In this document: one piece after another, positions 10,873 to 59,873 of the stretch
Position numbering within the stretch: the first letter of the stretch is position 1
How the letters are laid out: every line of letters starts with the position of its first letter
From: Fimbriosthenelais zetlandica
Taxonomy: Eukaryota
Length of the DNA stretch: 64,000 nucleotides
Direction of reading: 5' to 3'
Assembly: GCA_977030845.1 (NCBI GenBank)
Contig: OZ365114.1
Location: 22,320,001-22,384,000 of the forward strand
Translations under genes and position numbers: made by a program
The notes under the pieces: generated by a model
Database searches by the model: none
Told to the model about the DNA's origin: nothing
What the model saw: only the letters and a program-made list of their open reading frames with translations

Positions 10873-10967
10873 CCAATCACATCGCTGTGCGGGTCTAGGC
10901 CACGCCTCTCCCTTTGTATTTCTCCTGTGATTGGCGCCCCATTGATGGGAAATCTAGATTCTTATTG
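10873..10967 (-). promoter_or_regulatory. Proximal promoter module of SoxB2 copy A
   Basis: CCAAT 10873, CCACGCC (SP/KLF-like) 10900, CTTTGT (Sox) 10912, ATTGG 10930 and a further ATTGG near 10963. It lies about 600 bp upstream of the ATG and has the same layout as the module upstream of copy B. Confidence 0.6.
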
Positions 10968-11351
10968 GCTGCCGGCAGTGCGTGCCTCATTAAACATGTG
11001 AACAGGCAGGGGGTCGGATTCATGTGCTTCTGTGAGTGTTAGAAGTGAGAAATATTGTCTTACTCAATCAACTCGAGAATTAAGAAATGTTTTCGCGCTA
11101 AGGAAACTATTAACACTCTCCAAATGTCTATACTCATCATATAAATTGTGAGAGAGGCCATTAGTTAGAGTTCAAATGCCCAAATCATGACCTTTATAGA
11201 TATATTCATGCACTTGAGACCATTTGTTATGGAGTTAAAGCTACACTATTTTATATTCTTGGTTCTCAATAATCTGTAAAGGTTGCGCCCAAGGAGGTCT
11301 ATTACTCTTTTTCTCAGTCCTAAATAATCTACTAAGGCTGAGCACATGAAA

Positions 11352-11455
11352 TTCTATTAATGCTGCCCTACTTTGTTTCCTGATTGCTGGACACTAGACA
11401 AACTTCTATTAATGCTGCCCTACTTTGTTTACTGATTGCTGGACACTAGACAAAC
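11352..11455. repeat. Tandem duplication of a 52-bp unit (2 copies, 1 mismatch)
   Basis: TTCTATTAATGCTGCCCTACTTTGTTT(C/A)CTGATTGCTGGACACTAGACAAAC at 11352-11403 and 11404-11455. A partial third start occurs near 11478. Confidence 0.95.
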
Positions 11456-13391
11456 TGATAATATTATATGCATGCAATTCTATTAAAGCTGTCCTTCCAT
11501 TGTCCAAGAGTTAACTGTCCTCGAAAACAAATTAATGCTTCCAGACAAACATGCATGTTATAGAAATAGAGGCAGGCAGACAGAAAGAGATTACTCATAT
11601 GGACAGGAATACTAGCTATGGGGCAAATAGAAGTTGTATTGAGAAGATGGACAAAGGCAGAAGACAGGGATGGGGACAGGGACAGAGATACTAGGAGATT
11701 TATACGACTCTCAGTCATTAGAACCCAGTGAATATTCCACCCACAGTTGTAGGGGAAAGTGTTGAGCAACAGCTGTATCTTAGTTCCCGCGCTAAACACT
11801 AGGGGGATGTACTTGTCAGGCGCGCCCCAGTCTCTGGGTTCTTATCTTACCTGCAGATTGTTGGTTCATATAGTTGTAGATTGATACAACTGTACATGTA
11901 TATCGGAGGAAACAATTGAAGAAGTACATGAACATAGAACATCTCATTAAATAGTTCCTTTGTTTGCTTCATGTATTGCCTTTGTAGAAGTAGACAATGC
12001 CCGTGTGTGACATAATACATGTTATGTATTATTAATAACAAAGCTGCACCCATAATGGTCACTATAGGAGATTTAATCACATCCTATAGCTGTGGATCCA
12101 CACCTCAACTTCACAATATTTCACATAATTATAGGTGTTAATTACCCGCCTTTTACCGCATGCATATATTTTCATTCATTCAATGAGAACTGGTGTGAAA
12201 ATATCCATTTATGTTGGAGGATTGCTGCATCATCTTGTCATGAATCAAAGTCCAATGAAAGTGGACATTATTCAGGGACAAATGTATGTAGACAATGCTC
12301 TTGCCTGTGTCTACATACATCCTGGTGTCTGGTGATGCTGTATCATGCTTTCACAGTGTAAATAATGCCTTATGATGCCTCTAACATACTATCTCTATAC
12401 CGTTGAATAATGCCATAGTGGAGAACTATGTAGATGAATAGCGCTATGATGGAGAATAGCACGTGGGATGTTCCGTAATGGATAGACATGGCGGTCGCTA
12501 ATTTTTCCTATAGACATTGTGTCGAAAAGGGAAGTTTATTGTCTCGTTGTTACAGGCCTTTCCAGACCCACTTGAATATTTCACAGGGCTATATATAATC
12601 GCAGTCATGCAGTCTTTCACAGCTCTACAAGGCATCATAATTATTGACCTGTATGTATAGGTATACCATTAATACATGTACAGATATACCTGCAGTTAAC
12701 AGTAACTGCAAATCTATGTTTTATCTACAAAGTTTGGAAGGCACACCTTTCATGGGCACTGCTAGGGTAAATATACACGTATGTGCTGGAATTATTGCAA
12801 TTGAGAACCTAGCTTCTGGTATTAGTCTTATAGCATGTCTGCCGACGTGAGGGTTTTATATACTAATTATCATAATATGAATTGACAGTGTCAATAATAC
12901 ATGAAGATATTTTATATCTAGAGCAAACAAAAGGTTCAGGATCAAAAGCCCTCCGACCCGTGGATCCCCTCAAACTTATCTGATGCAAATCTAAACACAG
13001 AATGTAATAATGCTCCTATCTCAAGCCCAGATTCCCTCTATCTCAAGTTAGTTAATTTTCTCCTTCCTGTTCTGGCACTTACGTGTAACCACTCTATACA
13101 ATATAAACTATATTATGTTATGTCTCCTACAAAGGGACGTTGATAAACCCTAACCCTATGCCTAATCCGAAAAATAATAGATTTTTGAACGTGTACAAAT
13201 GAAATGATATGTCTCACACCTAGTTTAACTTATTTTAGATTTATTTGTTTTTGACACAATATATATCCTATTATTTAGACCCACGTGAGGTGTCTAATTG
13301 CATGTTTGCTCTTCATGCAACTAATCATAAATATATGAAGGACTGAACACAAAGGAAGCTGTCTCAAACAGTAATTACATGTATTATTTTT

Positions 13392-13406
13392 TATTGTTAT
13401 GCTAAA
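13392..13406 (+). promoter_or_regulatory. Sox-POU composite motif candidate
   Basis: TATTGTTATGCTAAA resembles the CWTTGTNATGCWAAT Sox-Oct composite. The context is AT-rich, so chance is possible. Confidence 0.3.
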
Positions 13407-15162
13407 ATTAATATCATAGTTATATTAATAGACAGTGTATTGGATGCCAGTGCTGTCATCAGAGGGGGCAAATTAGTTTATTCTGAACTGATATTGTATC
13501 CAGTTTTCCTTTAGCTGCCACTAACAGATCATTGGGATATTTTCCACATTTATCCTGCAAATCATTTACCAATAGTACTAGCATATAAAATGCATAGATG
13601 ATAAATGATATTATATGCAATTGTAATATTCTCACTTCCAACAAAGCATATGTTTATTCAACTTCTGAAAAGCACAGGGATATTCAGTCCACATGACATT
13701 ATTGTTAGGAAGAAACATTATGGTAAATGAACAATACACATTTGTCCCATTTCTTTAAGGTGATCTACCTGGAATTTAGCACCTCTTTCCAACTTATCCC
13801 TACCTGAACAAACAAATAATCATAAAAAAGTCAATAATCGGTCTAAATAATTGGTGCTACGGGCCTCAAGCTGTCAAGTGATTGAAAACATTAAGCAATA
13901 TGATATGATATAGTTATAAAATTTCTGTATACTGGGAATAATACATTTGGTGTTTCATTCAGCAAATTACAGTTGAACACAAAAGAATGAGTACAGAAAT
14001 CACCTATTTCTGTCACCTGAAAAGTTAACCATATCCTCATAGATCGTTCACCATTGAATACACCTTTGACAAATGTTCAATAGAGGTCTTCTCTGCAATA
14101 ATCAATATGATGAGGTAATTAGCCTTTGCATGGGAAGGGCAGACAAAGGTGGTAGACATGATCTACAGTTGAGCTATACACTAGTCCCTGTCAAGGTGTC
14201 AGAGCTAATTGTAGGCCCCTCTAATGTATGTCCACAATAAGCTGGCCAACATGGCGTGTCCACAAAGTGTGTGAACTTGCTCATGTATTTTCATCTTATG
14301 GCTACGATTTTTGCGTTATTCTGTTAAATTTGATTATATTATTCAAATTCAACAAATGAGCTGAGACACCCAGTGCTACTGAAAATGCTGAGAATAAATG
14401 TATTAGCTCTGCAGGTCGAAGGGAAATTATGCCTTACGCGTATTCCCATGGATGTATCATGTATGTTATATGGTGAGTTGAAAACACCAAAACATACATC
14501 TAAGTTTATTGTGTAATTAGTAGTGGAAATGTCAAAATATATATTATTCAAATTATGGCACTATTGTGGGTCAGTTATTTTGAAGTAGTACAGGTAAATT
14601 ACAGTATACTCAATCCCATATACATGTAGCTCTGTATGTACTGGAATAGACATAAAGGTTGGCTTGTTGGTGCCAAGTCCTCCAGGAGGCTGCCAATTAT
14701 TAACAAAGACTCTTCCATTAAATGGAGATTAACGGTCAATAGGTATTGTTACCTCTACTAGCAAGACATACAGAGGTAACGGGCCTCTTCACAGCGAGGT
14801 GTGAGAATGTGCGCCTTACTCCAGCTCTATCTAATAGGCTTGGGATCCAACTGAGAGCCTGGGATTCAATAGCTTAACAAGTAGAAATTCAATAGTCCTC
14901 AATGTGCAATTGACTCGAATAAAGAGATTGTTAATGCTTATGGTATTAGTAGATGGTACTGAACAATGGAATACGGTGTTAAAAGCCATTTATATGCGTC
15001 TGATTGTAGCGCCTGCAGAGGCTTGGCAAATAGCTATTAATATAGCTAAATCAGCCATCAAAGCAATCAATGGAGTGTGTTCAAATGGACCCCTGGCTCA
15101 TGTGGTCTTTCTAATTTTGAGGGAGTTGCCCAATGTAATAAGATATAGATTAAGCTACCCCT

Positions 15163-15377
15163 ACACTGGAGGCGTAGGAGAGCCTAAATTGAAACGCATG
15201 TGTCAGAAAACCCATCGTGCGTACCCTGACAGTGCGTCTCTGGTCGTCGCACAAACGCGTGCGTCTGAATGCATTCCAGCGTGGATGGTGAACACAAATG
15301 GCCAAATAAAAAGCTTCCATAGACATGTGTTTAGCTCAGGCGTCTATCAGGGACAAAAGTACGCACGCCTCCAGTGT
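15163..15377. mobile_element. Decayed MITE/fold-back element with CACTG...CAGTG ends
   Basis: Perfect 13-bp inverted repeats ACACTGGAGGCGT (15163-15175) / ACGCCTCCAGTGT (15365-15377). Inner inverted pairs are CGTGCGTAC/GTACGCACG and CCCTGA/TCAGGG. No clean TSD. Confidence 0.5.
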
Positions 15378-17583
15378 GTCAGTACCGTATTAAAGTTTTA
15401 GTTAAAGAAGTGTGGATGCATGAAAGTATAATAGGCTGTGACGTGAAGTGAATTATAGATGTAGAGTAGATGATTAGTGGCTACAAAATAAACCCTGACC
15501 CAGGATCTGTTCACTCTGTGTATCTGGGACGATCTGTTACGAAATGAACTAAAGTTGACAATTTAGTTCTTTAGTCCCCTTGTTTCATAAAGGCCACTCT
15601 TAACCTATTGTTAATGTGAATGCAGAGTACAATGTATGATACAGTTACTGTAACATGCACTCATCTTACATAGGATCAGGGTGTGGTGGCACATATTTTG
15701 TGATATAAAATACAAAGCATTCTTGTAATGATGAAAGAGTACCTTGACCCCTTGATTCATAATATTATGTGCATCACAATTAAGAATTTCATTGGTGAGA
15801 TGAAATTTGGAGTATATATGTACATGTTTCTAATCATTGTGCTATATCACATTATAGAGTATGGAAACTGTAGCTTCATATATAGACTCGACAAGGTTTC
15901 AAAGGCATGTTAAGGACTGATAAATTGCAGAACTGTTATTGGTAAGGGAAATAGTAATGAATCCAGCAAGACATGTGCCTCTACGGAGAAAAGATGGTAA
16001 CTTGTCTGTTCATGAGTGCGTGTGTGTGTTGTGGGGAGATTGTTGCATCTCTCCTTATCAGCCGTTGATATAGCAGCCACACATTGCCTCTTAGAAGAAC
16101 CAATGCTGGGCGAGATGAGAAAAGTCATACCGGAAGGCACTGTCTCCAATCGCATTATGGGTAAACATGGCGGACACAATGATGACTTGTGGGAAGGCAT
16201 CAGTGGACAGTGTCTGAGTGAAGGCTGCCATTGACAGCTGGGTAAATAGAAATTAACAGGCGCGGAGTGATCCAAACATAGCAGCCAGGCCGAGACACGA
16301 GCGACTCGAGCTCAGCGTGAGCACCTTACACACTGTAGCTCGAGTATACTTGATGTAAATAATGAGTTATGAATGTAACCACAGGGGTAGAAATAAGCTT
16401 GATCAGCTTGCTTCAGTTCTTCCATTGCTTCTATTCTTCTTTCACCCTGTTTTCTGCAACGTGGTGTCTTAGTTATAATGTCTTAGTTAATTTAACGTTT
16501 CTTCTCGGTCTAGCTTATATGTATTAAGGGTAATTCCTATGCTTCTCTTTAGAGTCTGTCATCATTATATATCTACAGGCCATAGCTTTAGCATCATATT
16601 ATCTTCTATTTGACTTTTCAAGAGGAAGTGAACTTTTTTTATTGGTCAGTAGTCTATACATAAATGTCCCTTTCTCGATACTTCCCGTGTGTCGATGGTC
16701 TGAGGTGCTCCGAGTCCAACAAGGTCCTTGACACCGGTCACTGCTCTCTACAATGAAAGGCAGTGCTCACTTCCGGTCAAAATCTGGCACCCATTCCCCT
16801 ATTATCGCACACTTGTAATAAGTGCCAAGTGATCTCTCGTCATGGTCTATTTATTTTGTCCACTTCCAAAAGGCTTTTTATTCTCCACAATGACGTCACC
16901 TAGGGCGACAAGGAGTCTAATAGAGATGACAGAAAAAGGGGCATTGATAGAGCAGAGAACATGATAAATGCTGACGGGGGGATTGATCCGTGTATGAATT
17001 TCCATGTGACCAGCACTCCACCTTATCCCAACCCCGGCCACCCAGCCCTACTTCATCACACAACGATCAATGGTCGATTCATATCTTGATTTGTCCTTAA
17101 TTGTGAGATCTAAAGCGCAGCTTTTGGTGTGAGCAACAAATGCATGAATGATGACTTGAAGTATGGAACCATTAATAGAGCGCCATTGACTGTTGCTTGG
17201 CACAATGGCGCCACGCTTTAAAAGCGGCGGCTTCATCAATCAGCGCTGTGGACCCACCAGTAATATGACGTACTGGCCGTCAGGATCTGACTTCTACCGC
17301 TGCCTCGAGCTGCTGGCAACAAACCTTGCCACCAAAAGGGGGGCACATGGATTGTGCGTTGGATTCCAGGAATCTGAGATGGCTTAGGTTGCAATTGCTT
17401 CTCTATTGGCAGAGAGATTTGGCTGAAACTATTATGGAAGTTGTTGAAAATGCCTGGGTTATTGAATGCCTGTCGCCTTATTATTATCCCAATCATTTGA
17501 GGACCTCCCATTCCCAGACCTTAGAAATATTTGTCACTACATCATGTCATTCTTGCCTATGTCTTATGAAATCCCATGCATAG

Positions 17584-17651
17584 CCCCCCCACCCCCCCCC
17601 CCCCCCCCCCCCACCCCTCACTCATGGCTACACCCCCCCCCCCCCCCACCC
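17584..17651. repeat. Two poly-C tracts (G4-capable on the minus strand)
   Basis: C-runs interrupted by single A at 17584-17617 and 17633-17651. Confidence 0.9.
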
Positions 17652-17719
17652 GCCACCATTCGGTACTAAAAGTACTAAAGCTTTACCACACGCCATACTG
17701 GGCACCCTGGTGGACGCCA

Positions 17720-18140
17720 CTGCAGCCAATACGTCAACTTCCGCTTCCTTTCGAATGCTGATCGAAGCGATCGATTTGTAACGGAAGCAGTTAGCGCTCA
17801 TGCATAGCATGCAGAAGGCGAGAAATTTATGAGGCTGGATAATTAATGGAGAGAGATGTGGTAAATAGAAATTAATGGTGGTAATTACCAGTGACCGAGA
17901 TTTATGGGAATATTCATTGTAGGCCCTATTGGTTGATTGCGCCACGTCATGGGTCATGCCCCTGTCATGTTTTGTTGGTTTGTGACATTGACTGGCTGCG
18001 CGCTGCGGTCGGATTTGACCCCAAGGCTGCAAAAATGCCTGTTTTAGTTTTATTGGATTTGTATGAATGTTGAAATTGGAATGACGATGGACTGAAAACG
18101 CGGAGAGCCGGGGGCGAGGAACGGGGTCAGCGGAGAAAAG
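17720..18140. promoter_or_regulatory. CpG-rich promoter-like patch
   Basis: CCAAT near 17726, ACTTCCG (ETS) near 17737, ATTGG at 17927, GCCACGTCA (CREB3/XBP1-type) near 17940 and GC-rich boxes at 18100-18135. No linked CDS. Confidence 0.35.
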
Positions 18141-21100
18141 AGAATTCATTGATTTGGTGATTGGAAATAAAGAGGTTGGAGAAAGAATGAAAAAGGTTCT
18201 CCTGTGTGAAAAATAATGAAGGAAAAATAAGGACGTGTGTAAGAACTATAACATCAGTGGAAATGTGGAATTTTGAGTGCTGAACATAATCTACTCGTAC
18301 AAGGAGCGTGAGGGGCTGACACTACTCGGCAATTTGAGTGATACAAAAGCACACTAGACGGCGCCCTTGTGCCGTGTGAAAGAGCTGATAGGTTACATTC
18401 TACACTTGATCTACAAATCAGTACTTCATACAAGTCAATCTAAATGAGGACCTAATATACTAATTATGAAATGCTCGGTCATAACAGTATCTTCTTCTTG
18501 TGCGCCTGTTCTTGCTTTTGATTTATTTTGATGCTGTCTCTTTTTGGTACCGTGGATTTTCTTACATAATAATCATCATTAATCTTGTATAATTGTGTTG
18601 TTGCTTCTTGCTCCTCTGCATTAGAGGGTGGTTGAGTGCCTTTTACTCTTGCTCGTACCCAAGTTTCCTCAGGCGCCTAAGGTCCGTCTATCCACATTCC
18701 CTTTCTCTTTCTCTTCCTCTTTCTCTTGCAGACGGCCCGACATTGTTACTGCGTTCCCTGAGCCTCCTTCCCTTCACAAAACCTCCTTTTCGTTGGCTTT
18801 CAGCTCGTTCCAATGAGTTACTTCTCCAGAGAAAATTCGATCAGCAGTGCCATTTAAACAGTATTGAGAGGCAAATTACTCGACAAATGATTGTGTGTTC
18901 ATCGTCTCCGATTGAATTGTGCCTAACGAGGGTGGCAAAATGGATGTCACATTATCAAATAGAAGCTAGGCTGCGCTTCCATTGGCGCGGAAAATAGCAC
19001 AGCATCGCCCCATAATAACCATATTAATGAGCGTTTCAATCATTCCCCGGCAGGGGGAGTGGGCTGGGGGCAGTTGCTTATGGCCAGTTCCGCCAGGGGC
19101 GTATATGTCGGGACTATGAGGTGAATACGTCCAATGGTTGGAGCAATAAGCATATAATTTAGTATTTTGAGTTGGCTCAGAGGAAGTCAGGCCACGTTGT
19201 GGACGATAATCGGGGTGTTTGTCGCGGTAAATGAGTCGCCTTAGAAGGTAATGGACGATGAATCGAATCAGGAATGGGATAGTGCGGTCTTCCCCCAAAG
19301 CCAATCTGCTGTCCAGGGAGGGCCGAGCAGCGCGGACAAAATGTGTCTTGTGGCTTTTACATGGAGAGGGGAAGTGTTTACCACCAAAGACTGGAGAAAG
19401 GCTATAGGCTCAGGCCTCCCAGCAACACCTAATCACGTTTGTACTTCTATCACTATGTCAGTCGAAGGCCATCCAAAGGCCAATGAGCCTGGCGAGTCAT
19501 CTCGGAGAAGCATACAATGATGTATGGTTTGTCCTTAATGGACTCAGGTTGTACTTAGACTCCAGGTGTCTGTTTCCATCTGTAAATTATCGTGACATAC
19601 GAAATACTTACCTAAATGGTCGAGGTATATATAATATTATACACATATAAATTTAATTTAGATTTGGAAATTTTCCCTTGCTTTTCTCTGATATCTTTGA
19701 TTCCGACATAAATTAGACAAAATGTACTCAGGAATTCTTCCTGTTTCCTTATATGGTCGAGACTGGGGACATAAGCATTTTCTTCTGCATTGCAGTAAGT
19801 GAAAGTCATTGTGTTAAATCATGCACTAATGGTACATCTGTGACTGGTATCGCAGCCTAAAGTGGCTCTCCATTCACACCAGACATGACTGTGTGCTCAA
19901 AGCAGTTCATCTGTTTATTAACGAGCCAACACTGTTGATTTTGCAATATTCTGACACAACAGGTCTCCTCCTAAGACAACACACATGTAATGGAGCGAAC
20001 CTCAATCGCCAATGCCTGTCAGAATGCCTACCTCCAGCAAGACATTTCCAGGCATTCATAGGCGAAAGGCTCCACCTACAGTGGGAGAGAGAAAATATTT
20101 TGAGAAGGAGTTTTGATGGGTGATGGAGAAAGCTGTGAAGATGTAATATTTCATCTGTGAGTTATTGCTGGGGGTTGGGGGTGGCCATGGCCGAGGCAAC
20201 ACTAGCTTCAATCACTCTATTTTCCAACACAACATGCAGTGCATTGTGACTGGGCGCAGCACAGCCATTAGAGCCATTTCCAGATACAAATGGCCTGGTG
20301 AAATATGTGCTTTGGCTGGGATCGATGGGTAAACAGGGTAGAAGGGAGAAACATCAGTGCAAGCCATGTGTTGAATAAAGAGTCGCTTGTCCTTCTTGTA
20401 TCCATACGCCCAAGCCCCAATATCCTCTCTCTCCATGTACTACTTTGTGTGGCACATTGTCCGGCCAGAATGACTTCCTCCGCACTACTTTTAGACTTAA
20501 CCACTGGGAAAAGTGGCCTGAAAGCTGTGGGCATGTAGTTACACTGTCACTGACTCCGAAAATATTTGTACTCAATTGAAAGCTGCGTCATGGGCGCCCG
20601 CGCTGTCCTCTGCTTCACTCAACTTCCGGTGCCGGAACACAAACCGCTGTCACACTCCTTTTGTAGGCTCATGGTGTCGCCTGTGTTCCATCAGTTCTAG
20701 TATTTAGTATATAGACATATATCTGTGACCACTGCTCCGAGAAGGATGGAAGAGTTTAAGAAACTCTTCAAAAGTGGGGCATGAACAGAAAGCACCAATT
20801 ACCTTTGGCTGGATGCACAGCGGATGATTACCCATACATTAGGCCCATGGCATAAGATCTGTGAGGGCTCGTACATGATTTATGAGAACCCTTGCAGAAG
20901 AAAAATGACTTGTGTAACACCATTATGACAGCTTGTACAAGATAAGAGCTTGACAAGGGCTAATTTGGCGAGATTTCAATGGGTGAGCACTCTCACCAGT
21001 TGCAAGACTGCAAGGATAGATTTCCGAACAAAATTATTAGGTCTCTGTCATACAAGCTTTGCTTAATTGCTACTTGGTACTTTACATTTGGATTTTATGA

Positions 21101-23558: not shown

Positions 23559-23584
23559 TGACGTCATTTCCGGTTCTGACGTCA
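23559..23584. promoter_or_regulatory. Overlapping ETS-CRE composite plus a second CRE
   Basis: TGACGTCA-TTTCCGG-TTC-TGACGTCA; the minus strand reads CCGGAAATGACGTCA. Confidence 0.45.
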
Positions 23585-24449
23585 TAAAATCCATGATGGC
23601 CTCCCTGGTGAGCGATAATAGGGGAGTTGTTACATTGTGAGTAGAGAGGCAGAAAGGTTTAGAAATCAAGGACGCTGTTTTAATCAACCACTAATTAAAA
23701 CCCTCGGCTAGTCTCCACACTTCTGCACAAGCACACCGAGTGGGGATGACGCTTTTAGTTCACTGTTCCGCTTCCATTTCAGATGGCGATACTTCAACTA
23801 ATTGATAGACTTTGGAGGCAGCATGGTCCTTTGAAAAGATGGAATAGAATGAAATGAATATGATCGCTATGTTGCTTTAAGAACCTCAAATAAAACATTG
23901 AAAGTATTGTGGTACGCGGGAGACGGATCCTTTTCAGGGGATGGAATGGCCGCGGCTGTTGATTGAAGTAGCACTATGAGATGCCGTAAATAAGGATGGA
24001 CTAGAGCTTTGTGATAAAAGTGGCCTTTAATGTCAACAATAGGCCATGATTACACTGAAGTCCTCAATGCAAGGGGACTCTTCAGTATCACAATGGCCAA
24101 AGAATTGGCATCATAGTACTTTGAACATCCCCCTCACATTCTTCTCTCAGATTGTTGTCGCGACAAAGGCGCTCTGTGTCGCTTCCAACAGTAAATGTAA
24201 CATGTACAATTTGAGTGAAATGATACCCTCTCGCCAGCATAATGAAGCTGCATTCAATCAGAAGATGCACCTGTTAGAGCGTTTCATTAGCGTTTTCATA
24301 GTCGCGAGGTATTTGAATGGGGCACTTAGACACGACAAAGCCGGACTTACATAATAGTAGCAAATAGACTGTTCTTTTTCAATGTGTGGGTTTCAATACC
24401 CCCTGCAGCCTTCTTCTGTGCTGAGGGTTCCTCGGCTCGACATTGGATC

Positions 24450-24790
24450 AAGTCCATATTCGGATGTCATTATACCCCACCCTCTCTAGATGTCACACTT
24501 CTATCCTTATACTCAACAGCATTAAGGTCGATTGTACCCAATATTTCAGTCACTTTCTTTACCAGGCCTCGATGTGAAAGCCAACAATCAAGATCTTGAT
24601 AACATATTTTGTCTACAATTTCTAAAAGTACATGACCAGTTTCTGTTAACAATTGCCGAAGGTCAAGTACTGGACACAGCATGTCTGTTCATCGAGCATA
24701 CAGCTGATGATGTCTGTAATGCTCGGTTCTATATAATGATTTATAAAGAAGAACATTTTCCAGATACCTTTGGCATCTATATTATTTCTT
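24450..24790 (-). mobile_element. Highly decayed non-LTR retrotransposon (L2/CR1-like) reverse-transcriptase fragment
   Basis: With frameshifts, the minus strand gives in order: a PQG-like segment, F..YIEP..DIIS, HQLYA(+1 nt)DE, then C..DL..WLSH..L..K.TEI.G. This matches the order of RT motifs around YADD. Judged by eye. Confidence 0.45.
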
Positions 24791-27786: not shown

Positions 27787-27804
27787 CATGGGTTCGACCC
27801 CCAC
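27787..27804 (+). mobile_element. Possible tRNA-derived SINE B-box remnant
   Basis: CATGGGTTCGACCCCCAC forms a T-arm-like stem with a TTCGACC loop. No A box or cloverleaf found. Confidence 0.2.
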
Positions 27805-31704: not shown

Positions 31705-31736
31705 CATAATTCATAATTTGCATATTCATAACAAAG
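31705..31736 (-). promoter_or_regulatory. Sox-POU composite with overlapping octamer
   Basis: The minus strand reads CTTTGTT-ATGAATAT overlapping ATGCAAAT, followed by TATGAATTATG. Confidence 0.45.
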
Positions 31737-41354: not shown

Positions 41355-41370
41355 TATATATATATATATA
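41355..41370. repeat. (TA)8 microsatellite
   Basis: TATATATATATATATA. Confidence 0.9.
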
Positions 41371-48415: not shown

Positions 48416-48576
48416 GCCTCATTGTGTGCTCGGTAGAGGGCCTCTAAAAGCCGGCCAGTGTTTCTGCGCCGGTCACAATGAGGCCATTGTGGGCAGGGGC
48501 CGGTCTTATTGGTGCCCGCCTCGCTTACTGTGTGGTGCTGACACCCATGGACAATGGGATCACGTGGACACAATAG
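48416..48576. promoter_or_regulatory. Homotypic Sox-site cluster (candidate enhancer)
   Basis: Five ACAAT/ATTGT cores in 160 bp, including the palindrome CACAATG-AGGC-CATTGTG; E-box CACGTG at 48561; CpG-rich context. Confidence 0.5.
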
Positions 48577-51500
48577 GAGGAGGTGCGAGCGCTACATTCA
48601 TGCGATCCCAGAAGGAGGCTCCAGGGCAGGCCCTGCAATAGAGGGCACCACCAAGTTCTTGCACCTCCATATTGGAGTTCCTTTGCCTGGGTACATCTCA
48701 ATATTTAACCCTTTCTCAGAGCTTCTAGACATAGATTTGCATTAAGATATTTTAATGTCATCTGCCATCAAAATTTATCCAAATATTTTCATTAATTTCC
48801 ATTTGAGGGAGATTTGCACTTCGTATATTGCTCTTCAGTATCATGTAATCTGAAGCTCCATTTTAAGATGCATTCAGAGCCATGTATATTCTATGATCAT
48901 GGCTGCCATTGCCAGATTTTCACCTGCGTTTCCCTCGTTGATGGAGAAAGGGTGAAGCAAGTACTCATGCAGTGGTGAGGGCATGCGAGGCCAGGGCCAT
49001 GCACGCTTCATCTTAAAGAATGGCTTCTAATATGGCCTCTTGAAGGGTGGTAGCCTATATATGCTGACCTTAGAATGGCAAGGAAGAAATGGATATTATC
49101 TCATAGTTATTGGTAGACCATTCTGCAGTTAAGTTGAAGGATGCCCACAAAATTTTATTCTGCAATTGTATTCATCCATCTGAAGGCATGTATTTAGAGA
49201 CCAGCACCAGCTCGTCTGAAGACCCTTGCCTTCTGGGAAGCAGTTCTTGTCATCTTTGAAAGTGGTCTGCTGAACCCCTACAACCAGTTCTGTCTCCATG
49301 TTGAAACAACTTCCTCACAGTTTGGCAAACTTTTCTGTGGTTTGACGACACGTCAACCCCCACCACATTGAGCTGTCCTTATTGGCAGCGTGGATCCTGC
49401 TGAGAGATGGTGCGCCTAGGCCAAATAATCTGAGGCACACATCAGAAAGCACTATGGGCATGGGTCGCGGCGGCTCAGAGCAGGGCCAGGGGTCACATTC
49501 TGTTGCTCGAATGATACGATTGTGCTGAAATAGTGCCTAATGATGGCATTATCCAGCCGTCAGGTCCAATTCGGTCCCGTCCCGCCCGATCCCATCCAAC
49601 AATAGCCTGGCCGGGAATTGTTGGGAGTCTTTGACAGTTTTCGATGCAGATCTTTATCGGCCACAACGGTGGTCGTGCGTCTATTTCGATAGCCATAATA
49701 CGTCTGATAATACAGCTTTCTCAAACGTGTCGTTTCGGTTCTAATGCAACTGTCAACGTGGCGTTTCGCTCCGTTGTTGCACTGTTCCACATTTTCTATC
49801 ACACCAAAAGCTCCGGGCGATGGAGATCTGTCAATAGGGGATGGAGGCCGTAATACCCCCGTTTATCGCCCAGTTACAGCGCCACAAACGAAAACACTTG
49901 GCTATTACAGCAGCCCCACACGGCAGGCAGGAGTCTGGAGATTCTATGGCACCTTTCATACAAGTTTTTGACAGTTGTGAAGATGGGGGACTTGGTGGAT
50001 TGTTTTCTGTGACAGACCGAGAACCCGCCACGACCAGATAGCCACCACCATAAAGGCCCTGCCTCTCACAGATATCTATAATGCACTTTCTTCTGGGCCC
50101 TCGTTTTTTCCCCTCGGTTTTCAGAAAGCTTCCAGTTTCAGAAATTTTATTTACCTAGGCCATGGACTATTTGATTCATTGGGCGGCTGGGCTTTTGTCG
50201 ATTATGCTTATTGTGGAGTTGTCACAAATCCCTGCTCAGCCCTGTGTTTGGATTTCTGCTGAGTGCTACATGAATGCTTTTGCTGGAAAAGTCTTAAAGT
50301 TTTTGTTACTTTATACTTCAGGAAGTCCTATATTCTCACCCATCGAATGATATGGCAATAACACATAAATTCAGAGCATAGCCTGTTTCTAAATTAATAC
50401 CCAATTAACTTCAATAATCGTGATCATAGAATAAAAATACATTTGTTCAACCTCGAGTACCAGATATCGAGCATCCAAGTATTTAATAGTTACTTCAATC
50501 AATTAGTGATAATGAGGCAATAACCGATAAAAAAAAGTTATTATGAGAGATGTTTAATTAATGGCCTGGTATGAAGTAAGCTTCTTTTCCTCAGCGAAAA
50601 TGGATGTTCAAATGACATTTTTAACATTCTGTATGTGCGGAAACATGAACATCTTCCCATAATTATGGCACTCCTGTGTTACGTCTATCGATTAAATATA
50701 GGCCTAAGTTCTGGGAACAAAATAAAACAACTGACCTTCCCCACGAGGTTATTTATACGTATCAACATAGGTGGGTGACTTTGATCTGTTCGGAAAGGCA
50801 AATTTGGCGTGATGTGAGGACCGACTGTTCTGCAAGGTCCTCAAGCCAACATTTACCCTGCCTTTTCTCCCCTCACAGATTGCTTTGTCAGCAATACAAA
50901 GCCAAGGTCACTGACATAATGGTGGCCGCCAAACACTTACACATGTACCCAGTCAGACTGCTGTTCTGGCTGTTGGTACAGTACAAAGCAATTGTCCAAG
51001 ACCTTTCTATTTTATACACGCCAAACAATAACCACCTGGCAGAGATCACAGTCACTTGAGTAAGTGTGGGCTTGGCAAAGTTGCCATTACACATACACCC
51101 AACTTTTCAGTTTTGGCTGAGCTATGCTTTGTCTTTAACCATACCCCCTATATCTTCCTACCATCTTTTGCCGTGACTCACCCCTGAAGGTATAGGTTAT
51201 GGCTTGTTCCGTCTTTTAACACTGGCTCCGACTAGTGAGAGTTTGATAAACCTCGGAGTGTTCTGCTGTTTCTCTGTCCTCTCCAATGTGACCAAAAAGG
51301 GAAATGTCTGTTCTATTCCCTTGATTGTCAATGTTTTACTACCTTGCTTTTAACTATTATATCGTCTATCAGTTTCTTTGATTGAATGAAATAATATATA
51401 CATTTTTGGAAGGTGGTGTACTGGAATATAATTGTGGGCATCCTGTTATATATTTATTGGCAGCATCCTTCCTTTTCCCATCAAGACAGTGATGTGGAAA

Positions 51501-54500
51501 TATACGTAGGCCAAAAATGTGTATGTATGAGAAGACACATGCCACATATAAATACTGGTAATACCACATACAAGCCTTAATAATGTCCATAATGGAAATG
51601 GAATCATTCAAAAGGAACTAGTTGCACTTATGCCATCTCTGACGTTGTATTTGAGTTATGTGTCACATTTCTCTGTTTATGGGGGAAGTTATCAGATATA
51701 TTTTCATGTGAAATATAGTGGACGCATTGTAAGCCTTGCAAGTGTGTGTCTCGTAGATCATGGGACTGAATCAATGCATTAAACCACAATGTATAGGTTG
51801 ATTGCGGCACCAAAGGCATCCTACCAGTTGCTATTCTGTTTGTTGGTATAGGTGTGTTCCTATGGCTTTGTTTGGTGTAAAAGGCAAGCCTGAATAGTTG
51901 GGTGGTGACAAAATTCAATCTATTCCGGATGATACTTGGTGTTTTATAATTGCCAGTCGTGATATTCCAACATATGGAAATTATTGTTAAAAAGATTGTT
52001 AATTGAGATATTGAGGAACCATGTACGTCCTATTCTGACATGTAATAGTTTGCTGTTAGAAGTGTATATTACTAAATTTATCACAGTCTTTCTTCATTGC
52101 CATGCCCATGCCCATGGTTACAGTGACAAAGAGACATTTGTCCAACATCTTCGACCTTCTTTTTAGTTCTGAACTCTGACCCCACATTGCCCCCATTCAA
52201 CTCCTACCACTGCCCCCACCTCTCCTCCCCACCTATGCACCCCTTTGCCCTCCTCCTGTTCCACAGCGCCCTCTTCATCCTAACAAAGAGGAAAAAATTG
52301 TTTCCAGCCTCCCTTTCATTGCTCCCCTTTTCAGAATTATCGCGTTCATTAGTTGTGTTTTCATTGTGGCGGCTCGCTCATCGTTCGGTGTGTGTAAACA
52401 AAATGCCTGCCATCGCTGCAGGGGCTCAGCCAAGACCAGCCAAGGGCCCAAGGTGACAAAGCAGTCCTTGTCGATCGAATAACACTACTCATTTAGAAGC
52501 ATTCAAAGGCTAAATTGCCGGATGAATGACTTGGCTATATATTGAATTCCAGCTAATGAATGCCCGCTGGTGTGGTGCGCATTATTTGACATTAGCGACC
52601 ATTGAGCTTCGGCCGGCTGGAAAATACACCATGTTATCTTCCAAATAACTGTGATGTGATTATAGGGTCGGGAGAAGGAGCCGCCCGTGATGCTTGACCC
52701 CGCTGCTATGGTGGTCCAGGCTGAGTACACATGCGCCCCCTATTGTAGACAGTTCGTGCTCCTGGACCACCGTAGTTAACGTCGTTGGCATGGTAGGAGA
52801 TGACGTTGTATATCGTGTTATGTGCGGTCTGTGATCAGAGATCAAGTCCACCTCCCTATCGCCTGTGTGAGGGAGTATGTGTATTAGTCAATCGCTATGT
52901 GTTAAAGCTCGCTTGTGGGTCCCCGCGTCCCTGCGACGTTGCACCATTTCCTTATACTACTATGACCAGGTCTGCTTCTGGAACCATGTAAGTAGTATAG
53001 AAAAATTGAACATTGCCTCAGGCGAAAAATAAACAAATTCATCATAAATGGGCCAACAATTCTCTCAACTGATGTGCATTCACCACTTGAACCCCTCCTA
53101 CCATTGAAATAATAATTATTATAGTCATAACCGGAATCTCGCACAACACCCCAGTTTTTTTCTGCCCTTTTTTTCTTCCCTCCAAGTGATTCACATGGTG
53201 TCCAATTTGTATTGCCCCAAGTTCGACTTGATGAAATGAAACCTCATGTTGTATGTATAGGCTATAGAGATATCCTACTTGCACTGTCTTGACATCGGGC
53301 ACCGTTTTTATACAATAAAGGCAAGAAATGTATCTTAGACATAAAGACAAGGGATTTATACTGATTTGCTCTAGTAGCCTATAAGTGCCAGATGTGCACC
53401 CTCTCTGCTTCCTCCCTTCTGCCCTCACCGAATGTTGCCAAGCCGATTACAGGGTCCATAGCAACGCCCGCCTTTCAAAACCACAGTCCTCCTCTCTAAT
53501 TCTCCCACTCCAACACCCTGCCAGATAATCGATACAACAAGCATAAAACAAACACCACGCTATGTTGACTCCGCCAATTTGTTATCGTCATCTTCTTCTC
53601 CTTTTCCACCGTGACCATGCATGATGAGGCCAGTGATTGCAGTCCTGGGTCCATGCTAACAACAACAAACAAAAACAAGCGGTTAAAGATAAAGAAGCCC
53701 GGCGTAAATGGCCTAGTTTCCCCCTTGCCAAGACGAGCTAAATTGAGGTGTCGGGTTTGATGCCCTACTGATGGGCCTGACTCCTGTCACATGTTCCCGC
53801 CGCCGGCCACCTATATTTTACACTCGGCTGAGTTTCCCGCCGTAAGTTCATTTGTCGTCTGCTCACCCAGTTTCCTGCCATGAATCCATTTTATCGTCTG
53901 CTCATCAGCTGATCGTGTGAGTCTGTAGTCGCGCCTTTTCGGTTGTTGGTATAGGACAACTGCAGTGATTTTTCATGGGCTATTCTCGTGAGCTCTTACC
54001 GTTTTTCATTAGGTCTAGATTCTGGAGAAAATGAAAGATCTATAGAAACAAAGATGCCGTTGAATGTTATGCAACCATTTTTGTCTGAGCTAACACCTAA
54101 TACGTTTAGGAACATTATCAATTATCTCCATTTAGAATGTAAATGGCCTTATAAATTGAAGGCTCAAAACAAGCCAAAGCTTTATGAAAGTGGGGGAAAA
54201 TCAAACATCTGCATTAATTTTTTTTGTAAAGCATTGATATGAAAATTGTCTCCACATATACATCACTTAACATTTGATGCTCTTAATTCCTTAATTCTTT
54301 TATAATTCGCATTTTATCGCCAAGCACTCTGCTTCCGAGTCCCTCAGCAGGATCTCGCGTCAAGTCTCGTTAATTCTCTAGCCAGGAACGCGAGGTTTAA
54401 TAAGTGATGACAACAGATTTATTAAAGCCTACTTCAGGTCTCACGCCACAAACCTGCGTCTCGATCCGTACCTTTGTTCTGTAGCTTCCGTCATATTAAT

Positions 54501-56822
54501 CTGCAGTCCGCCTTCCCCTTCTCCTCTCATCCTCCCAACACCTGTTTCTCCACCCAAATTACCACCGTCCGCCCCGGCCCTATTCACTCGCACTCAATAG
54601 GCCTTTGACGGCGGTAATTCACCGGCTTTAACTCCCGTTGAGCTGTCAGTGGAGAGCTGGGAAAATTAGTGTGGCGTTTTGTGTGGAAGTGCTTGCTGCA
54701 CACCCCCACTCCGCCCCACCCCGACCGCCAGTGTAACATATTCGGAGATGAAGCGCGACCTGGCGGGGTAATTGGCAATTACTAAACTGGACAAGAGTGC
54801 GCATGTGTGAAAAGAGAGAGGGGTTTGGAGACGTAGTTGATAGGGCAAAAAAGGTGGGGCCAGTTGTCCACATTCTTCCCATATTTCCTCCTGCAGGAAG
54901 ATAGAGCTCGGAAGATGCTGGGAAGTATGTAGATATATATAGACAGGAGTTCTGCTGATAGGTGTGAAGGTAGCTTAACAAGCCCGATGAATTATGTTCA
55001 ACTATCAGATGATGGAATAAGAGTGATGTGATTTTACGATGTTTAAAACAGAAATAATGAGTTTCTCCAGTCACAACAGTTGAGCTTATTTGAGGTATAT
55101 ATTTGCCCCTATATAATTGGATTTTTGCGAAATTGTTTTATTTAAAAATAATTTAAATAGTGCATATTTAGGGAACAATATACGCATTTAAAAAAATAAC
55201 CATAAGGAGGAAGTTTCAAACTGACGTTTATGTTTATTCATTCGATTATTGATGTACACATGCCTTTCATCCTCTTAAAGACCTCTCTTTTTATTATTTG
55301 AAGCACTTGTAACAATAATTATCTCACATTAAATGTGTATTTTCCCACAATACTCTTTAGCAATATTCGCACAGACTGAAAAGTGTATCCTTCTAGATTC
55401 TGGCAGAAAGTCAGTAGGAATAAAATTTAGCTTCGCCAAAACAGAACAAAACATTAACAACAATGTATACTTATGATAAGTTATGGAATAAACAATGTGC
55501 TCACGCCCAACCACAACACTATAACTATTGATAATAATCACCATTGGTACAATCATCGAGTTTCAGACAACAACCGCATAATAACACTGCAACATCTACA
55601 TCCTATTGACGCCCATTGTTAATTAGTAATTCCATTAATCATGATTAGTCCTATATTCATTAACTTAAAACCCCTCTCTGTGGTCCTCTTTAACGAGCAC
55701 TTGTTCATTAATAAACAAGATTCCATTCCACTCATTAATGTCATTCTTCTGCACAATTACAATCCCTAAATTGCAGTTTCAGCCAATTATGCAAATGTTA
55801 TCACATAACGAAGAAGCAAGAATATGAGTGTAGGAGTTAAGGAACTTCTCACAGAAAACAAGGTTATCTACTGAGAAATGAATGTCCTTTTTACTCTCAT
55901 CTCGTTTTCGTCGGCATGGATTATTTATAAAGAGCACCATTGTAATCATATAGTCCAAGTCCTATTCTTTTTTATGGTGTAGGGAGGTAAGGATGTAGGT
56001 TTAAGGATGGCCTTTAATTGTTGAATGCTTTAGTGGTGAATGAACTATTCTGTGATGGAGAACATTACATGTTCTTGGTCTTCAGGCAGGGTAGACCGGG
56101 GAAGTCACAGGATGTTTGACGGAAAGGGGAGGCACGCAGTCGGTGGGCTATTATCCCTGTTTCCCGGGATGACAAAGGGTCTCGGCAGGTTTCTAAAGAT
56201 TAATTGGCAAGGAATGTATCTGGAAATATAAAACACAATATTGATGAGTCCTTGACAATATACTTGGGTGACATGACTTGCTTGCCCTAAAAATATTGAA
56301 ATCCGTGATATACTAATTATGTACATGTGCGTGTATCTATGTAGCAGTAGCTTATATCATTAATGTTCATAGAAATATTGAGACTAAAACATAAACTCTT
56401 GCGGCGGATATATGACGGATTTCTATAATAACTTGCTCAACTGAAGGCATGAATTGTAGCTGCATTATAATATCTAGGGAAGTTGACTGATGGATTTTAT
56501 ATATGCAATACAGTCTCATATCACCACGATGCCAAACAGATATTGCATCTTTCCTGAAGATCTAAAGGAAGAGATGCCATACGCACGCATTCAGTATCCA
56601 TTCAGGGAGAATTCAGTGATTTCAGAAACGGGTATTTAACCCAATACAACGTGACGTGTGCATTTTTTATTTACTGAGCCAGGGACATAGTTATAGTGGC
56701 CAGCTGGATTCAGTTGAGAGTTACTATAGTCACTATACAAAGTCCCCTATGAAGGGACTACCTAGAGTTTCTCCTATTTCCTATTCACCCCACACCTCCC
56801 CTCTCACGTGTAATAGGTAGAA

Positions 56823-56872
56823 GGGCCTGGGGGTGGGGAGGCAGGGTGGGGTGTCTGGAGAGGATGGGAGGG
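56823..56872 (+). other. Putative G-quadruplex-forming sequence
   Basis: GGGCCTGGGGGTGGGGAGGCAGGGTGGGG satisfies the pattern of four G3+ runs with 1-7 nt loops; two more G3 runs follow. Confidence 0.6.
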
Positions 56873-57970
56873 TGAGAGGAGCAGAAGGGTTTGGTAACAT
56901 TGTGCATTTACTCCCCTATAGAAAATCAATGCACAGGGAAACAATTAGGTCGTCATTTGTGAGATAACAATGCTATCATTGACGGCTGAAGGAAGGGAGA
57001 GCGCTTCCTAAATGATATATAATCAATATATTCATCCGCGGCCGCTTACAAATAACATCATCCTCATCAGACATGAATGTGTCATTAAGCCCGACCCAAA
57101 ATACGATGACAGTCTCTGAGTCTATACTATAAATCTTCTCTCTACACGCACTCCTCCTCTTTACTTAATTAATAACACACCCACAGCCCTGCTCCAACCA
57201 TATGAATTTCCTATTTCAGTTTTCCCCCAAATTCTGTTAATTTGATATTTCTTTTTCATGAAATGTGAACAATACATTCCATATCATGATTTTATTCCTG
57301 ATATTCCTCTATTTCTAAGATCTCTCTTATAGCTGGACTCGAAATGAAAGAAAAACATGATATACATGTCATATTATTGCATAATTAGGTCTTGATTGAA
57401 TATTCGAAGGCGGATGAATATGAATGGTATTGTTGGAAGTATTTCATTTCCGCCATGGGTCTATATCGCGGTTATAAAACTTGCCAACATAATTAGTAAC
57501 GGGAAAGGTCCAGTTTCCTAAATTCCTAAAGAAAATATGGTTACCATGCAGTCCAAAAGAATTTATGTGCGGTAATTTATATTAAAAGTGCCTATATATA
57601 TATTTATTTTATCGATTCAAATTCTGCTTGTGATTATGGACAAACGCATCACCTAGATTGCTGAAACTATCTTAAATATGGAAATTATTGGTTTTTTTGT
57701 GTTTGCTCATTGCGATATAACGTAATGTTGCTTACCTTTTCTCTCTTTCTTCAACGGATCTTCATTTATGGACGCGTCAAGCCACCGACTCCCAGACCTG
57801 ATATTGGCCCAGATTAAAGATGCTTCCTCCAGAGTGTTTCCATCCAGGTCATGTGCCCATAGGAAATAGGAAGTCTATATATATACGTGGACGTTTGCCT
57901 TTCAAGACGAGAGGATTTGGAAAACATTTGTCAGTGTTGGGGATCCAAATTTCGGAAGTTGGAGAATCAG

Positions 57971-57976
57971 TTTATT
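57971..57976 (-). terminator. Candidate polyadenylation signal for SoxB2 copy B
   Basis: AATAAA on the minus strand 125 nt past the stop codon; a second one lies at 57603-57608. Confidence 0.4.
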
Positions 57977-58100
57977 TTTAATTGAATGATGAGTGTCCAA
58001 TATCACAGGTACAGAGATAATAAATCATAGACAGGGGCATCCTTTTAAAAATAGTTCATTTTTCATGTCTATGACAAACTAAAGGCCTTTAATTAGGCGG

Positions 58101-59003
58101 TTATATTGTGCCAGTCACTTTGCTTCTCTCTCCGGGTTTGTGTAACAGTACATAGGCCGCCAGAGGGTGTCTAAAATCAGACTGACTTGATGGAAGGCTA
58201 AATGAGGGGTGAGCAGCCAAGCCAGGGGTTCCCCATGGCCCTAACATGTACTGACTGGAATGTTGACTGGTGAGCCCACCAGATGAGAAGGGCCCCAGCC
58301 CGGCGGGGTATGGGAAGAGGCTCGGCGAGGTGTGTAGATCGTGGGGCCTGATGGGGCCGTGGCCCTCGGCCTCGGCGCGACGATGCCCGGCAACTGCTGC
58401 GGCACTGGCTGCTGCTGCTGCAGGATCAAGATGCGGGTAAAGCGAGGTAGGCAAGTGAGGCATGAAAGAACGAGACATGTCACTAAGAGCTGCAGCTGAC
58501 AATAAATCAGCAGCTGACGGCTGGCCACCAGAGTAACTCAGACCACACCCATAACCCTGCAGGTAGGGCATGGGAAATGCATACTTGTCCTTCTTCAGCA
58601 GACTTTTGGGCTTGCGTCTGGGTCTGTACTTGTAGTCAGGATGCTCTTTCATGTGTAACGCCCTCAACCGTTTGGCTTCGTCAATGAATGGTCTCTTCTG
58701 CTCATCACTTAAAAGTTTCCATTCGGCTCCGAGTCGCTTTGAGATTTCTGAATTGTGCATCTTTGGATTTTCCTGGGCCATTTTCCTCCTCTGTCCTCTG
58801 GACCAGACCATGAAGGCGTTCATGGGGCGTTTAACATGCTCTTCCTCACTGCTGACCACTGGTCGAGTTGGCTGTCCAGGCCTCTGTGAGTGACCGGCCA
58901 TCTGGCTCATCATGGGTGATAATGGAGACATTCGAGAGAGTGGCGACAGTGAGGAGACTGGCGAAATGGGCCTCGTCTCTTCTTGAATCATCCTATCAGA
59001 CAT
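58101..59003 (-). CDS. SoxB2: SoxB2 (Sox14/Sox21-like) HMG-box transcription factor, copy B, 300 aa, single coding exon; more divergent paralogue
   Basis: Complete HMG box plus [15 protein letters not shown]-terminal [11 protein letters not shown] resembles the SoxB2 PxAYxL motif. ATG at 59003, TAA at 58101-58103, no internal stops. Confidence 0.93.
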
Positions 59004-59812
59004 TATTACTTGTTTTAAAGTTCAGAATAAATACTTTAATAAGTTATTTTTGGATGGAATGTTCGTCCGGGAAACTGGCAAAATGTAGCAAAAGGCAGAT
59101 GAATAGAGCAGGAGAAGAACTGAAGATTTTCCTCGGAAAAGATGCCCCTGAATGAGTTCTTGTAGTAGTAGTACTTTAGATTGTGAATATGATCAGGCTA
59201 GCAGAAATGGTATTCAAACAGCAGGAGAACGCCTTTACAAAAGGTACAGCTGGCGCAGAGCCAATGGGTATTGTTGCAGCTTTCTTGCACGTGGTTCTAT
59301 TTTCACGCAAACAGTCACTGGTTCTTTTTGGAGTCCTGAATGTCCAGAGAGATCCTGAAATCCAGCGATGATCAAGTGGCCAGCTGGTTACAATAGCTAA
59401 TTCCTACAGATGCAGGTGGTGTCTACCAAACTTGTCTGCCTGACTTAATTTTTCTATAGCATTGCCCGAAAGCAAGGAATAGTTCAGATAACAATGGCTT
59501 GATAGTGTAGAAGAAAACAATATCCTTTCCCTGATCGGATGCTTTCTTCAACTAATCTCCGAGTAAGAGGTATGTGGATAAGGACGCCCGTGATTCTGTT
59601 TCTCCTTCTCCAGATTCCTCGGCAAAGATGAACCGTTCTTGCAGGGAGTGGGAAGTATCTGTGTTATATGTGTGAGTGAGCGTGTGTGGTCGAGCTAGGA
59701 TGATAGTGCCAATACAAACCAGCTCCCCATGCGCTCCTGAGTCACTCTCTGCTTTAACACCCCTTCAACTCTTCCTTGTCATTCAGCACCCAGCGTCTTG
59801 TCACCTTCATGA

Positions 59813-59873
59813 CCAATCAGCATCATAGCCACCCAGACCACACCCACTCTATTGTTTCTAGCAGTCTGATTGG
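59813..59873 (-). promoter_or_regulatory. Proximal promoter module of SoxB2 copy B
   Basis: CCAAT 59813, CCACACCC (KLF) 59838, TATTGTT (Sox) 59850 and ATTGG 59869. AP-1 TGAGTCA lies at 59738, and the leader towards the gene is ATG-depleted. Confidence 0.6.

Follow-up and report, generated by a model that had tools for sequence, protein, structure and literature searches.

A four-part candidate promoter module retained upstream of two tandem SoxB2 paralogues in Fimbriosthenelais zetlandica

The window analysed here, a stretch of 64,000 nucleotides from Fimbriosthenelais zetlandica (assembly GCA_977030845.1, contig OZ365114.1, positions 22,320,001 to 22,384,000), carries two tandem Sox genes, paralogues A and B, and upstream of each we find the same four short motifs in the same order: a CCAAT box, a Sox-like ACAAW site, a GC or GT box, and a second CCAAT box in inverted orientation. 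Comparisons within the genome, with a related species and across animal phyla lead us to propose that each module is probably the proximal promoter of its SoxB2 gene, of an NF-Y plus Sp/KLF type, and that it was retained in both copies after a lineage-specific tandem duplication.

Results

By protein similarity and phylogeny, both window genes are SoxB2. Spiralian SoxB2 (Sox14/21-like) proteins were the best matches of both predicted proteins, with the 342-amino-acid protein P0001 as the closest homologue (71% identity). In the tree, A and B formed sister clades (Shimodaira-Hasegawa-like approximate likelihood ratio test 94) within annelid SoxB2, closest to Platynereis. Each copy grouped with its own orthologue from a related species, so the tandem duplication is lineage-specific and predates the split of the two species. 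The A and B proteins are 54% identical over their full length, 87 of the 89 residues of their HMG boxes are identical, and paralogue B is fast-evolving outside the HMG box, with a long branch in the tree.

Read in gene sense, both copies present CCAATCA, then ACAAAG (A) or AACAAT (B), then GGCGTGG (A) or GGGTGTGG (B), and finally TGATTGG. Module A runs from 10934 down to 10873 as CCAATCAC, 9 nt, ACAAAGG, 4 nt, GGCGTGGCCTAG, 15 nt and TGATTGG, ending 612 bp before the ATG of gene A, while module B runs from 59873 down to 59813 as CCAATCAG, 10 nt, ACAATAG, 3 nt, GGGTGTGGTCTGG, 13 nt and TGATTGG, ending 810 bp before the ATG of gene B. The original prediction had listed the sites along the plus strand, and we recovered every one at its exact position: CCAAT at 10873, CCACGCC at 10900 (+27), TTGT at 10914 (+41) and ATTGG at 10930 (+57) for copy A, and CCAAT at 59813, CCACACC at 59838 (+25), TTGT at 59852 (+39) and ATTGG at 59869 (+56) for copy B. 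Its gap-free pairing of the 18-nt segments from the KLF to the Sox site also holds, with 11 of 18 positions matching when counted by hand, as does its remark that the DNA around the modules is unalignable, since blastn of A against B matched the HMG box only. The modules themselves are unlike at most non-motif positions. Module A is preceded, ~420 bp further upstream, by a young 52-bp tandem duplication (11352-11456; 2.0 copies, 98% identical), each copy of which has a perfect AAACAAAG site of Sox/TCF type and a near-CCAAT, GCAATCAG.

In the related assembly the orthologue of A is L001 (69% protein identity) and that of B is L003 (75%); the two lie 161 kb apart on one contig, on the same strand. 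Upstream of both stand CCAAT, ACAATAG, GGNNTGGYC and TGATTGG in identical order, at -1038 in L001 and -1114 in L003. Four-fold-site divergence between the species, taken from the HMG box, is ~1.0-1.8 substitutions per site; silent sites are thus saturated, and unconstrained DNA should be randomised between the two species. On these comparative grounds, the cross-species retention shows that the module is held by selection. The proposal that both paralogues had kept the module is borne out by the related species, in which all four parts lie upstream of both orthologues. Conservation in relatives had been named beforehand as one of the points on which this proposal could fail, and the corresponding upstream regions of the related species and of the nemertean Lineus were found to carry the four parts.

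Two further observations concern how the module came to be upstream of both genes. In the 6 kb upstream of A, the module together with an extra upstream CCAAT was the only non-coding blastn match to the orthologous locus (E 9e-5). Motif variants also cross paralogue lines, with ACAATAGAGTGGG found in B and L001, and GGCGTGGCCTA, the GC box sequence of A, found identically in the B orthologue L003; this crossing points to inheritance from one ancestral module rather than recent copying. MAFFT misplaced the motifs, both in an alignment of the two upstream regions and in one of five modules, and a blastn comparison of the entire window with 13 loci returned coding matches only; conservation was seen only via anchored motifs. 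The A orthologue probably begins upstream of its called start (L001 9905-10000): from an in-frame ATG 96 nt further up, the protein would have 337 amino acids, nearer to A (319) and P0001 (342), and the 891 nt before this ATG contain no other.

The window taken by itself is weak evidence, because the bare pair CCAAT N40-70 ATTGG is not enriched there (4 occurrences vs 5.6 expected). We therefore give counts for the whole 447-Mb genome, with the reversed pattern as control. The loose pattern CCAAT / ACAAWRG / TGATTGG had 15 matches vs 17 in the control, and among the 15, GGYGTGG was present only in the two SoxB2 sites. The pattern CCAAT, ACAAWRG, GGYGTGG had six matches vs none in the control, two of the six being the SoxB2 modules. 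The full module is unique in the genome, and both 241-bp module regions are single copy. This restriction of GGYGTGG, the single-copy regions and the cross-species retention together argue that the module is non-random. Two look-alikes, at C10:32746480 (ACAATAGAGGCTGGGTGTGG) and C1:51901483 (ACAATAGGAGGGCTGGTCTGG), were set aside as chance matches, as neither has a Sox gene, a correctly placed CCAAT frame or an evident gene. The stringent pair CCAATCR N40-52 YGATTGG occurred 214 times genome-wide vs 45 in the control; repeat families make up much of this excess, and no general promoter class could be defined from it. Some dispersed families (e.g. C1:15016290-15016348 and C1:15257301-15257360) consist of a 55-60 bp unit bounded by CCAATC...GATTGG, and these units look like the inverted ends of small elements resembling miniature inverted-repeat transposable elements.

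Parts of the same arrangement recur upstream of SoxB2 in other phyla. Lineus has CCAAT, ACAATAG, GCGGTGGCC and ATTGG within 62 bp at -310, and Owenia has CCAATCA, AACAAT at +18 and TGATTGG within 85 bp at -2627. An inverted CCAAT pair lies at -410 in Lingula, -331 in Mytilus, -387 in Branchiostoma and -340 in Ptychodera, so that in a protostome-to-deuterostome comparison the pair stands at -310 to -410 in nemertean, brachiopod, mollusc, amphioxus and hemichordate, with a spacing of 65-68 bp in the deuterostomes. Across phyla the DNA between the CCAAT boxes is unalignable, and the inverted pair is absent in fish Sox14. An inverted pair within 1.2 kb of the ATG was present in 10 of 13 SoxB2 loci, against a background of 10 pairs in 298 kb, or 0.04 per 1.2 kb (P ~2e-12, or 3e-7 counting 6 of 9 lineages only; both values are approximate, the motif windows and spacing ranges having been picked after viewing the data). 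The proximal TGATTGG was found in all 13 SoxB2 loci examined and also upstream of this genome's SoxB1. Start-to-start spacing is 56-57 bp in 6 of 11 loci (A, B, L003, Lineus, Lingula and Mytilus), and a third CCAAT box lies exactly 34 bp upstream in A, L001, the annelid locus L012 and Lingula (L016). Copy B is without this third box and, as we read the sequences, has lost it. From this distribution, the opposed-CCAAT frame would be ancestral to SoxB2 across spiralians and probably across bilaterians, and the Sox-like site together with the GC box is, judged by motif, common to annelids and the nemertean.

The upstream region of Tubulanus (L013) is organised differently in its far part, where five tandem ~64-bp units, each with GTTGACCAAT, form a CCAAT array at -2659 to -2405 from the SoxB2 ATG; its proximal promoter has TGATTGG at -187, GGGCGTGGC and a degenerate distal ACAATCAC. 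Among metagenome contigs, which are of mixed taxa, the inverted pair was found in 5 of 18 SoxB2-like vs 0 of 21 SoxB1-like loci (one-sided Fisher ~0.015, our own calculation), although the five positive loci are close relatives and count as one lineage. In these five (L031, L035, L040, L043 and L052) an inverted-pair module, CCAATGACGATTTTTAATTTTCTTGTTC...CATTGG, stands 450-700 bp before the ATG; it is strongly conserved and holds reverse-oriented CTTGTT and TTTGT cores. Four other SoxB2-like loci, with an LLVRK..DKYP tail (L027, L028, L034 and L047), have only a near-identical proximal CTGTGATTGGTCG at -199 to -234, and the distal CCAAT has apparently been lost in their lineage.

The individual sites were compared with known binding preferences. 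NF-Y favours CCAAT boxes of the form RRCCAATSR, and all four boxes of the window have such flanks (A, GCGCCAATCAC and TTAACCAATCAC; B, CTGCCAATCAG and ATGACCAATCAG), as do those of the orthologues; NF-YA (PF02045) is encoded in the genome, with a match above cut-off at C25:27413501-27414102. The Sox-like site is offset from the distal CCAAT by +17/18 in A, B, L001, L003 and Owenia and by +22 in Lineus, and the heptamer ACAATAG is identical in B, L001, L003 and Lineus. The A site (TACAAAG) matches the Sox consensus WWCAAWG in full, and the ACAATAG of the other four loci has the AACAAT/ACAAT core without the terminal G. Retention in a nemertean, and in four loci whose divergence is saturated, makes it very probable that the Sox-like site is functional; SoxB1, or any other Sox/HMG factor, is an equally possible candidate binder alongside SoxB2. 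The GC/GT box matches CCMCRCCC at 8 of 8 positions in B (CCACACCC) and L003 (CCACGCCC) and at 7 of 8 in A. It is shifted in Lineus, and the part invariant across A, B, L001, L003 and Lineus is TGGYC, which makes Sp, KLF or a Zic/Gli-type finger protein the candidates for this box.

The DNA between module and start codon has the signature of a transcribed leader. Over ten loci, this interval contains 29 sense ATGs vs 83 expected from shuffles (P ~7e-12), and the equal-length stretch upstream of the module is not depleted (94 vs 86 expected). From +90 after the module there are 10 ATGs vs 63.5 expected (ratio 0.16, a ~six-fold depletion), compared with 69 vs 72.5 for the reverse complement CAT and ratios of 0.66 to 1.59 for the other permutations, and the residual upstream ATGs lie mostly within ~80 nt after the module. 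Gene B follows the same pattern, as three of the four ATGs in its leader are within 82 nt of the module and the equal-length stretch upstream of the module has 18 vs 13.2 expected. A strand-specific ATG purge is the pattern expected of selection against upstream AUGs in a transcribed leader and would thus place the mRNA 5' end near the module, where we infer the transcription start. Lineus, Mytilus, L003, L012 and Owenia have TATA-like runs 29-60 nt past the proximal box, which agrees with the usual distance of CCAAT boxes from the start site, -60 to -100 (PMC11802806). In the gene A leader, a putative intron of the 5' untranslated region, which we propose with low confidence (Table 1), takes in four of the five upstream ATGs.

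The near-identity of the HMG boxes has an origin of its own. The original prediction had noted it, and the 87 identical residues stand, but the resemblance is not simple retention. Third-codon identity in the HMG box is 83% between A and B and 89% between L001 and L003, compared with 52-58% between orthologues, and four-fold distances are 0.44 and 0.12 within species vs 1.0-1.8 between species. Silent identity that is higher within a species than between orthologues is explained by gene conversion between paralogues, and the comparison indicates that the two species have each homogenised the HMG boxes of their tandem genes independently, over distances of 49 kb in the window and 161 kb in the relative. 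Conversion extends over only ~300-400 bp of the HMG box; elsewhere the genes, like their promoters, diverge.

A SoxB1 gene (L019, 330 amino acids, RRKTKTLMKKDKYALP) lies at C21:21521468-21521713, ~800 kb from the window and on the same chromosome and strand as the SoxB2 pair, so that SoxB1-SoxB2 linkage is retained. Upstream of it are GCTGTGATTGGTCG at -254 and CACCC and GC boxes, with no opposed distal CCAAT in this region. The coordinates of the window features are collected in Table 1.

Table 1. Predicted features of the two SoxB2 loci in the window (positions count from the first nucleotide of the window)
Feature	Position	Strand	Details
SoxB2 paralogue A coding sequence	9302-10261	-	single exon, 319 amino acids, HMG box 9833-10099
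Inferred gene A 5' leader	10262..10872	-	upstream-ATG depletion
Possible 5' untranslated region intron, gene A (low confidence)	10312-10823	-	donor CAG/GTATCT, acceptor polypyrimidine-TTCTTACAG/
Module A (distal CCAAT, Sox-like site, GC box, proximal inverted CCAAT)	10873..10934	-	62 bp
A proximal inverted NF-Y box (predicted)	10873..10877	-	gene sense TGATTGGTT
A GC box	10900..10906	-	gene sense GGCGTGG, then CCTAG
A Sox-like site	10911..10918	-	gene sense TACAAAGG; 17 nt after distal CCAAT start
A distal NF-Y box (predicted)	10930..10934	-	gene sense GCGCCAATCAC
A-only third CCAAT box	10964..10968	-	exactly 34 bp upstream of distal box
SoxB2 paralogue B coding sequence	58101-59003	-	single exon, 300 amino acids, HMG box 58572-58838
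Inferred gene B 5' leader	59004..59812	-	4 ATGs vs 13.1 expected
Module B (same four parts)	59813..59873	-	61 bp
B proximal inverted NF-Y box (predicted)	59813..59817	-	gene sense CTGATTGGTC
B GT (CACCC) box	59838..59845	-	gene sense GGGTGTGG
B Sox-like site	59849..59856	-	gene sense AACAATAG; 18 nt after distal CCAAT start
B distal NF-Y box (predicted)	59869..59873	-	gene sense CTGCCAATCAG

Discussion

As a proximal promoter, the module would work as follows. The two opposed CCAAT boxes, ~57 bp apart and joined in copy A by the third box 34 bp upstream, would bind the NF-Y trimer and hold the promoter open. The GC/GT box between them would bind an Sp/KLF-type zinc-finger protein, and the ACAAW site, at its fixed 17-18 nt from the distal box, a Sox-family HMG-box factor. 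Transcription would start ~100 bp or less downstream of the proximal box and give a long leader poor in upstream ATGs. Both copies would have inherited the module at the tandem duplication and kept it under purifying selection.

Several observations weigh against this proposal. The Sox-like site is absent in Lingula and the annelid locus L012, and Mytilus has ACAAG only. The GC box is degenerate in L001 (CCAGGCCC, with two core changes), where it reads GGGCCTGG, a poor KLF site. Tubulanus, fish Sox14 (L023) and clitellate-like metagenome loci retain the proximal TGATTGG(TC) only, and the inverted spacing of 56-57 bp is outside the 24-28 or 35-37 bp of classical NF-Y double boxes (PMC4889920). 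To these must be added the choice of motif windows and spacing ranges after the fact, and the inverted box pair itself, which would fit a bidirectional promoter too.

That last point is an alternative in its own right: the opposed boxes could drive SoxB2 in one direction and a non-coding transcript in the other, an arrangement like that of vertebrate SOX21/SOX21-AS1. In its favour, the pair is symmetrical and has strong NF-Y flanks on each strand, and CCAAT arrays have been reported at bidirectional promoters (PMC1802594). The open reading frame list and blastn gave no open reading frame or conserved sequence upstream in the divergent direction, however, and we regard a bidirectional function as unlikely; it would in any case be compatible with a proximal SoxB2 promoter and does not exclude one. 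It is very improbable that the resemblance of the two modules arose by chance or was copied between the paralogues by gene conversion. The bare inverted pair does occur at chance frequency in the window and gene conversion does act between the two genes, but the short conversion tract, the dissimilarity of the modules at most non-motif positions and the motif variants that are common across paralogue lines between species all speak against this, and the cross-species conservation effectively refutes it.

Which protein reads the ACAAW site is the question on which the remaining explanations differ. The original prediction had suggested that the SoxB2 proteins themselves use it, so that the paralogues would regulate themselves and each other through the common module. 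The site does keep its offset in the two paralogues and their orthologues, as well as in Lineus and, at +18, in Owenia, and HMG boxes that are nearly identical and actively homogenised should allow both proteins to read the same sites. Yet the core motif is common to all Sox proteins, SoxB1, whose gene lies 800 kb away, is no less likely to bind, the B-type AACAATA is without the terminal G of WWCAAWG, and the site is missing in Lingula and L012 although the promoter frame persists there. On balance, auto- and cross-regulation is a doubtful reading of the site. It is also possible, without being the more probable case, that the NF-Y plus Sp/KLF frame is real and that ACAAW is read by another factor (SoxB1 in a feed-forward arrangement, a non-HMG protein, or TCF/LEF at the A-type CAAAG) or is conserved only for the spacing or DNA shape that it offers NF-Y. 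A TCF/LEF core likewise fits the A site, TACAAAGG, and in invertebrates SoxB1 and SoxB2 are both neural factors. NF-Y contacts 25-28 bp around CCAAT (PMC4889920), a footprint that reaches towards +17. Against such readings, the form common to four loci, ACAATAG, does not qualify as a TCF site, and an exact heptamer kept across annelid and nemertean argues for base-specific recognition.

A broader interpretation of the proximal promoter can be offered only tentatively. What is conserved may be a regulatory grammar and not a sequence: a frame of opposed NF-Y boxes of spiralian, maybe bilaterian, age, with CCAAT-34 bp-CCAAT-57 bp-ATTGG as its spiralian state, to which the annelid/nemertean Sox site might add a direct SoxB input. 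Both copies would then have kept this link, and conversion, by keeping their DNA-binding domains identical, would hold the promoter in step with the protein that reads it.

Between animal phyla, promoters and enhancers can seldom be recognised. The SoxB2 frame could be traced by the order and spacing of its motifs in annelids, nemertean, brachiopod, mollusc, amphioxus and hemichordate, at least six phyla in all, despite unalignable sequence, which gives a concrete 60-bp target for understanding the activation of a key neural regulator in spiralians. Two paralogues in each of two species, with the same four sites in otherwise randomised DNA, also make a natural experiment on the cooperation of NF-Y, Sp/KLF and Sox factors at a fixed geometry. 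The leader analysis suggests in addition that a transcription start region can be located from sequence alone by way of upstream-ATG depletion.

Comparison with known systems

We found no earlier description of a conserved SoxB2 promoter in the literature. Frith and Ni (2023) report only 25 bilaterian-conserved segments, and the SoxB2 (Sox21) entry among them is an enhancer (PMC10735318). Those segments resemble the present case in belonging to a developmental transcription factor gene, in their perfectly conserved CCAAT boxes, and in a position and orientation to the gene that are kept across phyla. They differ in that the SoxB2 element described there is an enhancer, whereas here a candidate promoter is conserved in motif order and spacing, with blastn failing beyond the sister species.

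A functional parallel is human SOX14, also a single-exon SoxB2 gene; according to a statement in PMC3956720 that cites Djurovic and Stevanovic (2004), NF-Y activates it, with a CCAAT box on which its proximal promoter depends. In the present modules NF-Y dependence is predicted. The comparison draws on that citing statement and covers the CCAAT box and NF-Y; no account of a Sox site in the human SOX14 promoter was found. Among vertebrate Sox14 genes, the one fish locus examined (L023) differs from the window genes in having the proximal inverted box only, at -486. Human SOX3 is activated by NF-Y with Sp1 and TALE factors (PMC5590877), and the SOX3 and SOX2 promoters share with the SoxB2 modules a SoxB-group gene, multiple NF-Y elements and Sp-type GC boxes (there also MAZ and PBX1/MEIS1), although they belong to SoxB1 and not SoxB2 genes. 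NF-Y is also known to work alongside Oct4, Sox2 and Klf4 in embryonic stem cells (PMC11802806).

A further relative is the DECA-11 bp-CCAAT composite (TALE, NF-Y, Sp2; bioRxiv 10.64898/2026.02.16.706105), in which, likewise, the site of a second factor keeps a set distance from an NF-Y box in developmental promoters. No GAnnGAC stands 11 bp from either box in the window; the module of Owenia does contain CTGTCAATCA, though not at the distance of this composite. Double-CCAAT platforms that enclose Sp1 sites form an established class of promoter (PMC4889920), and the modules share with them two bona fide boxes, a GC-rich site in between and, as predicted here, a location in the promoter. The 34-bp direct pair of copy A comes near their 35-37 bp class, whereas the main pair is inverted, falls outside both of their spacing classes, and encloses an extra Sox-like site. 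Set beside these systems, the module would be an invertebrate addition to the NF-Y-driven SoxB promoters, with an unusual geometry.

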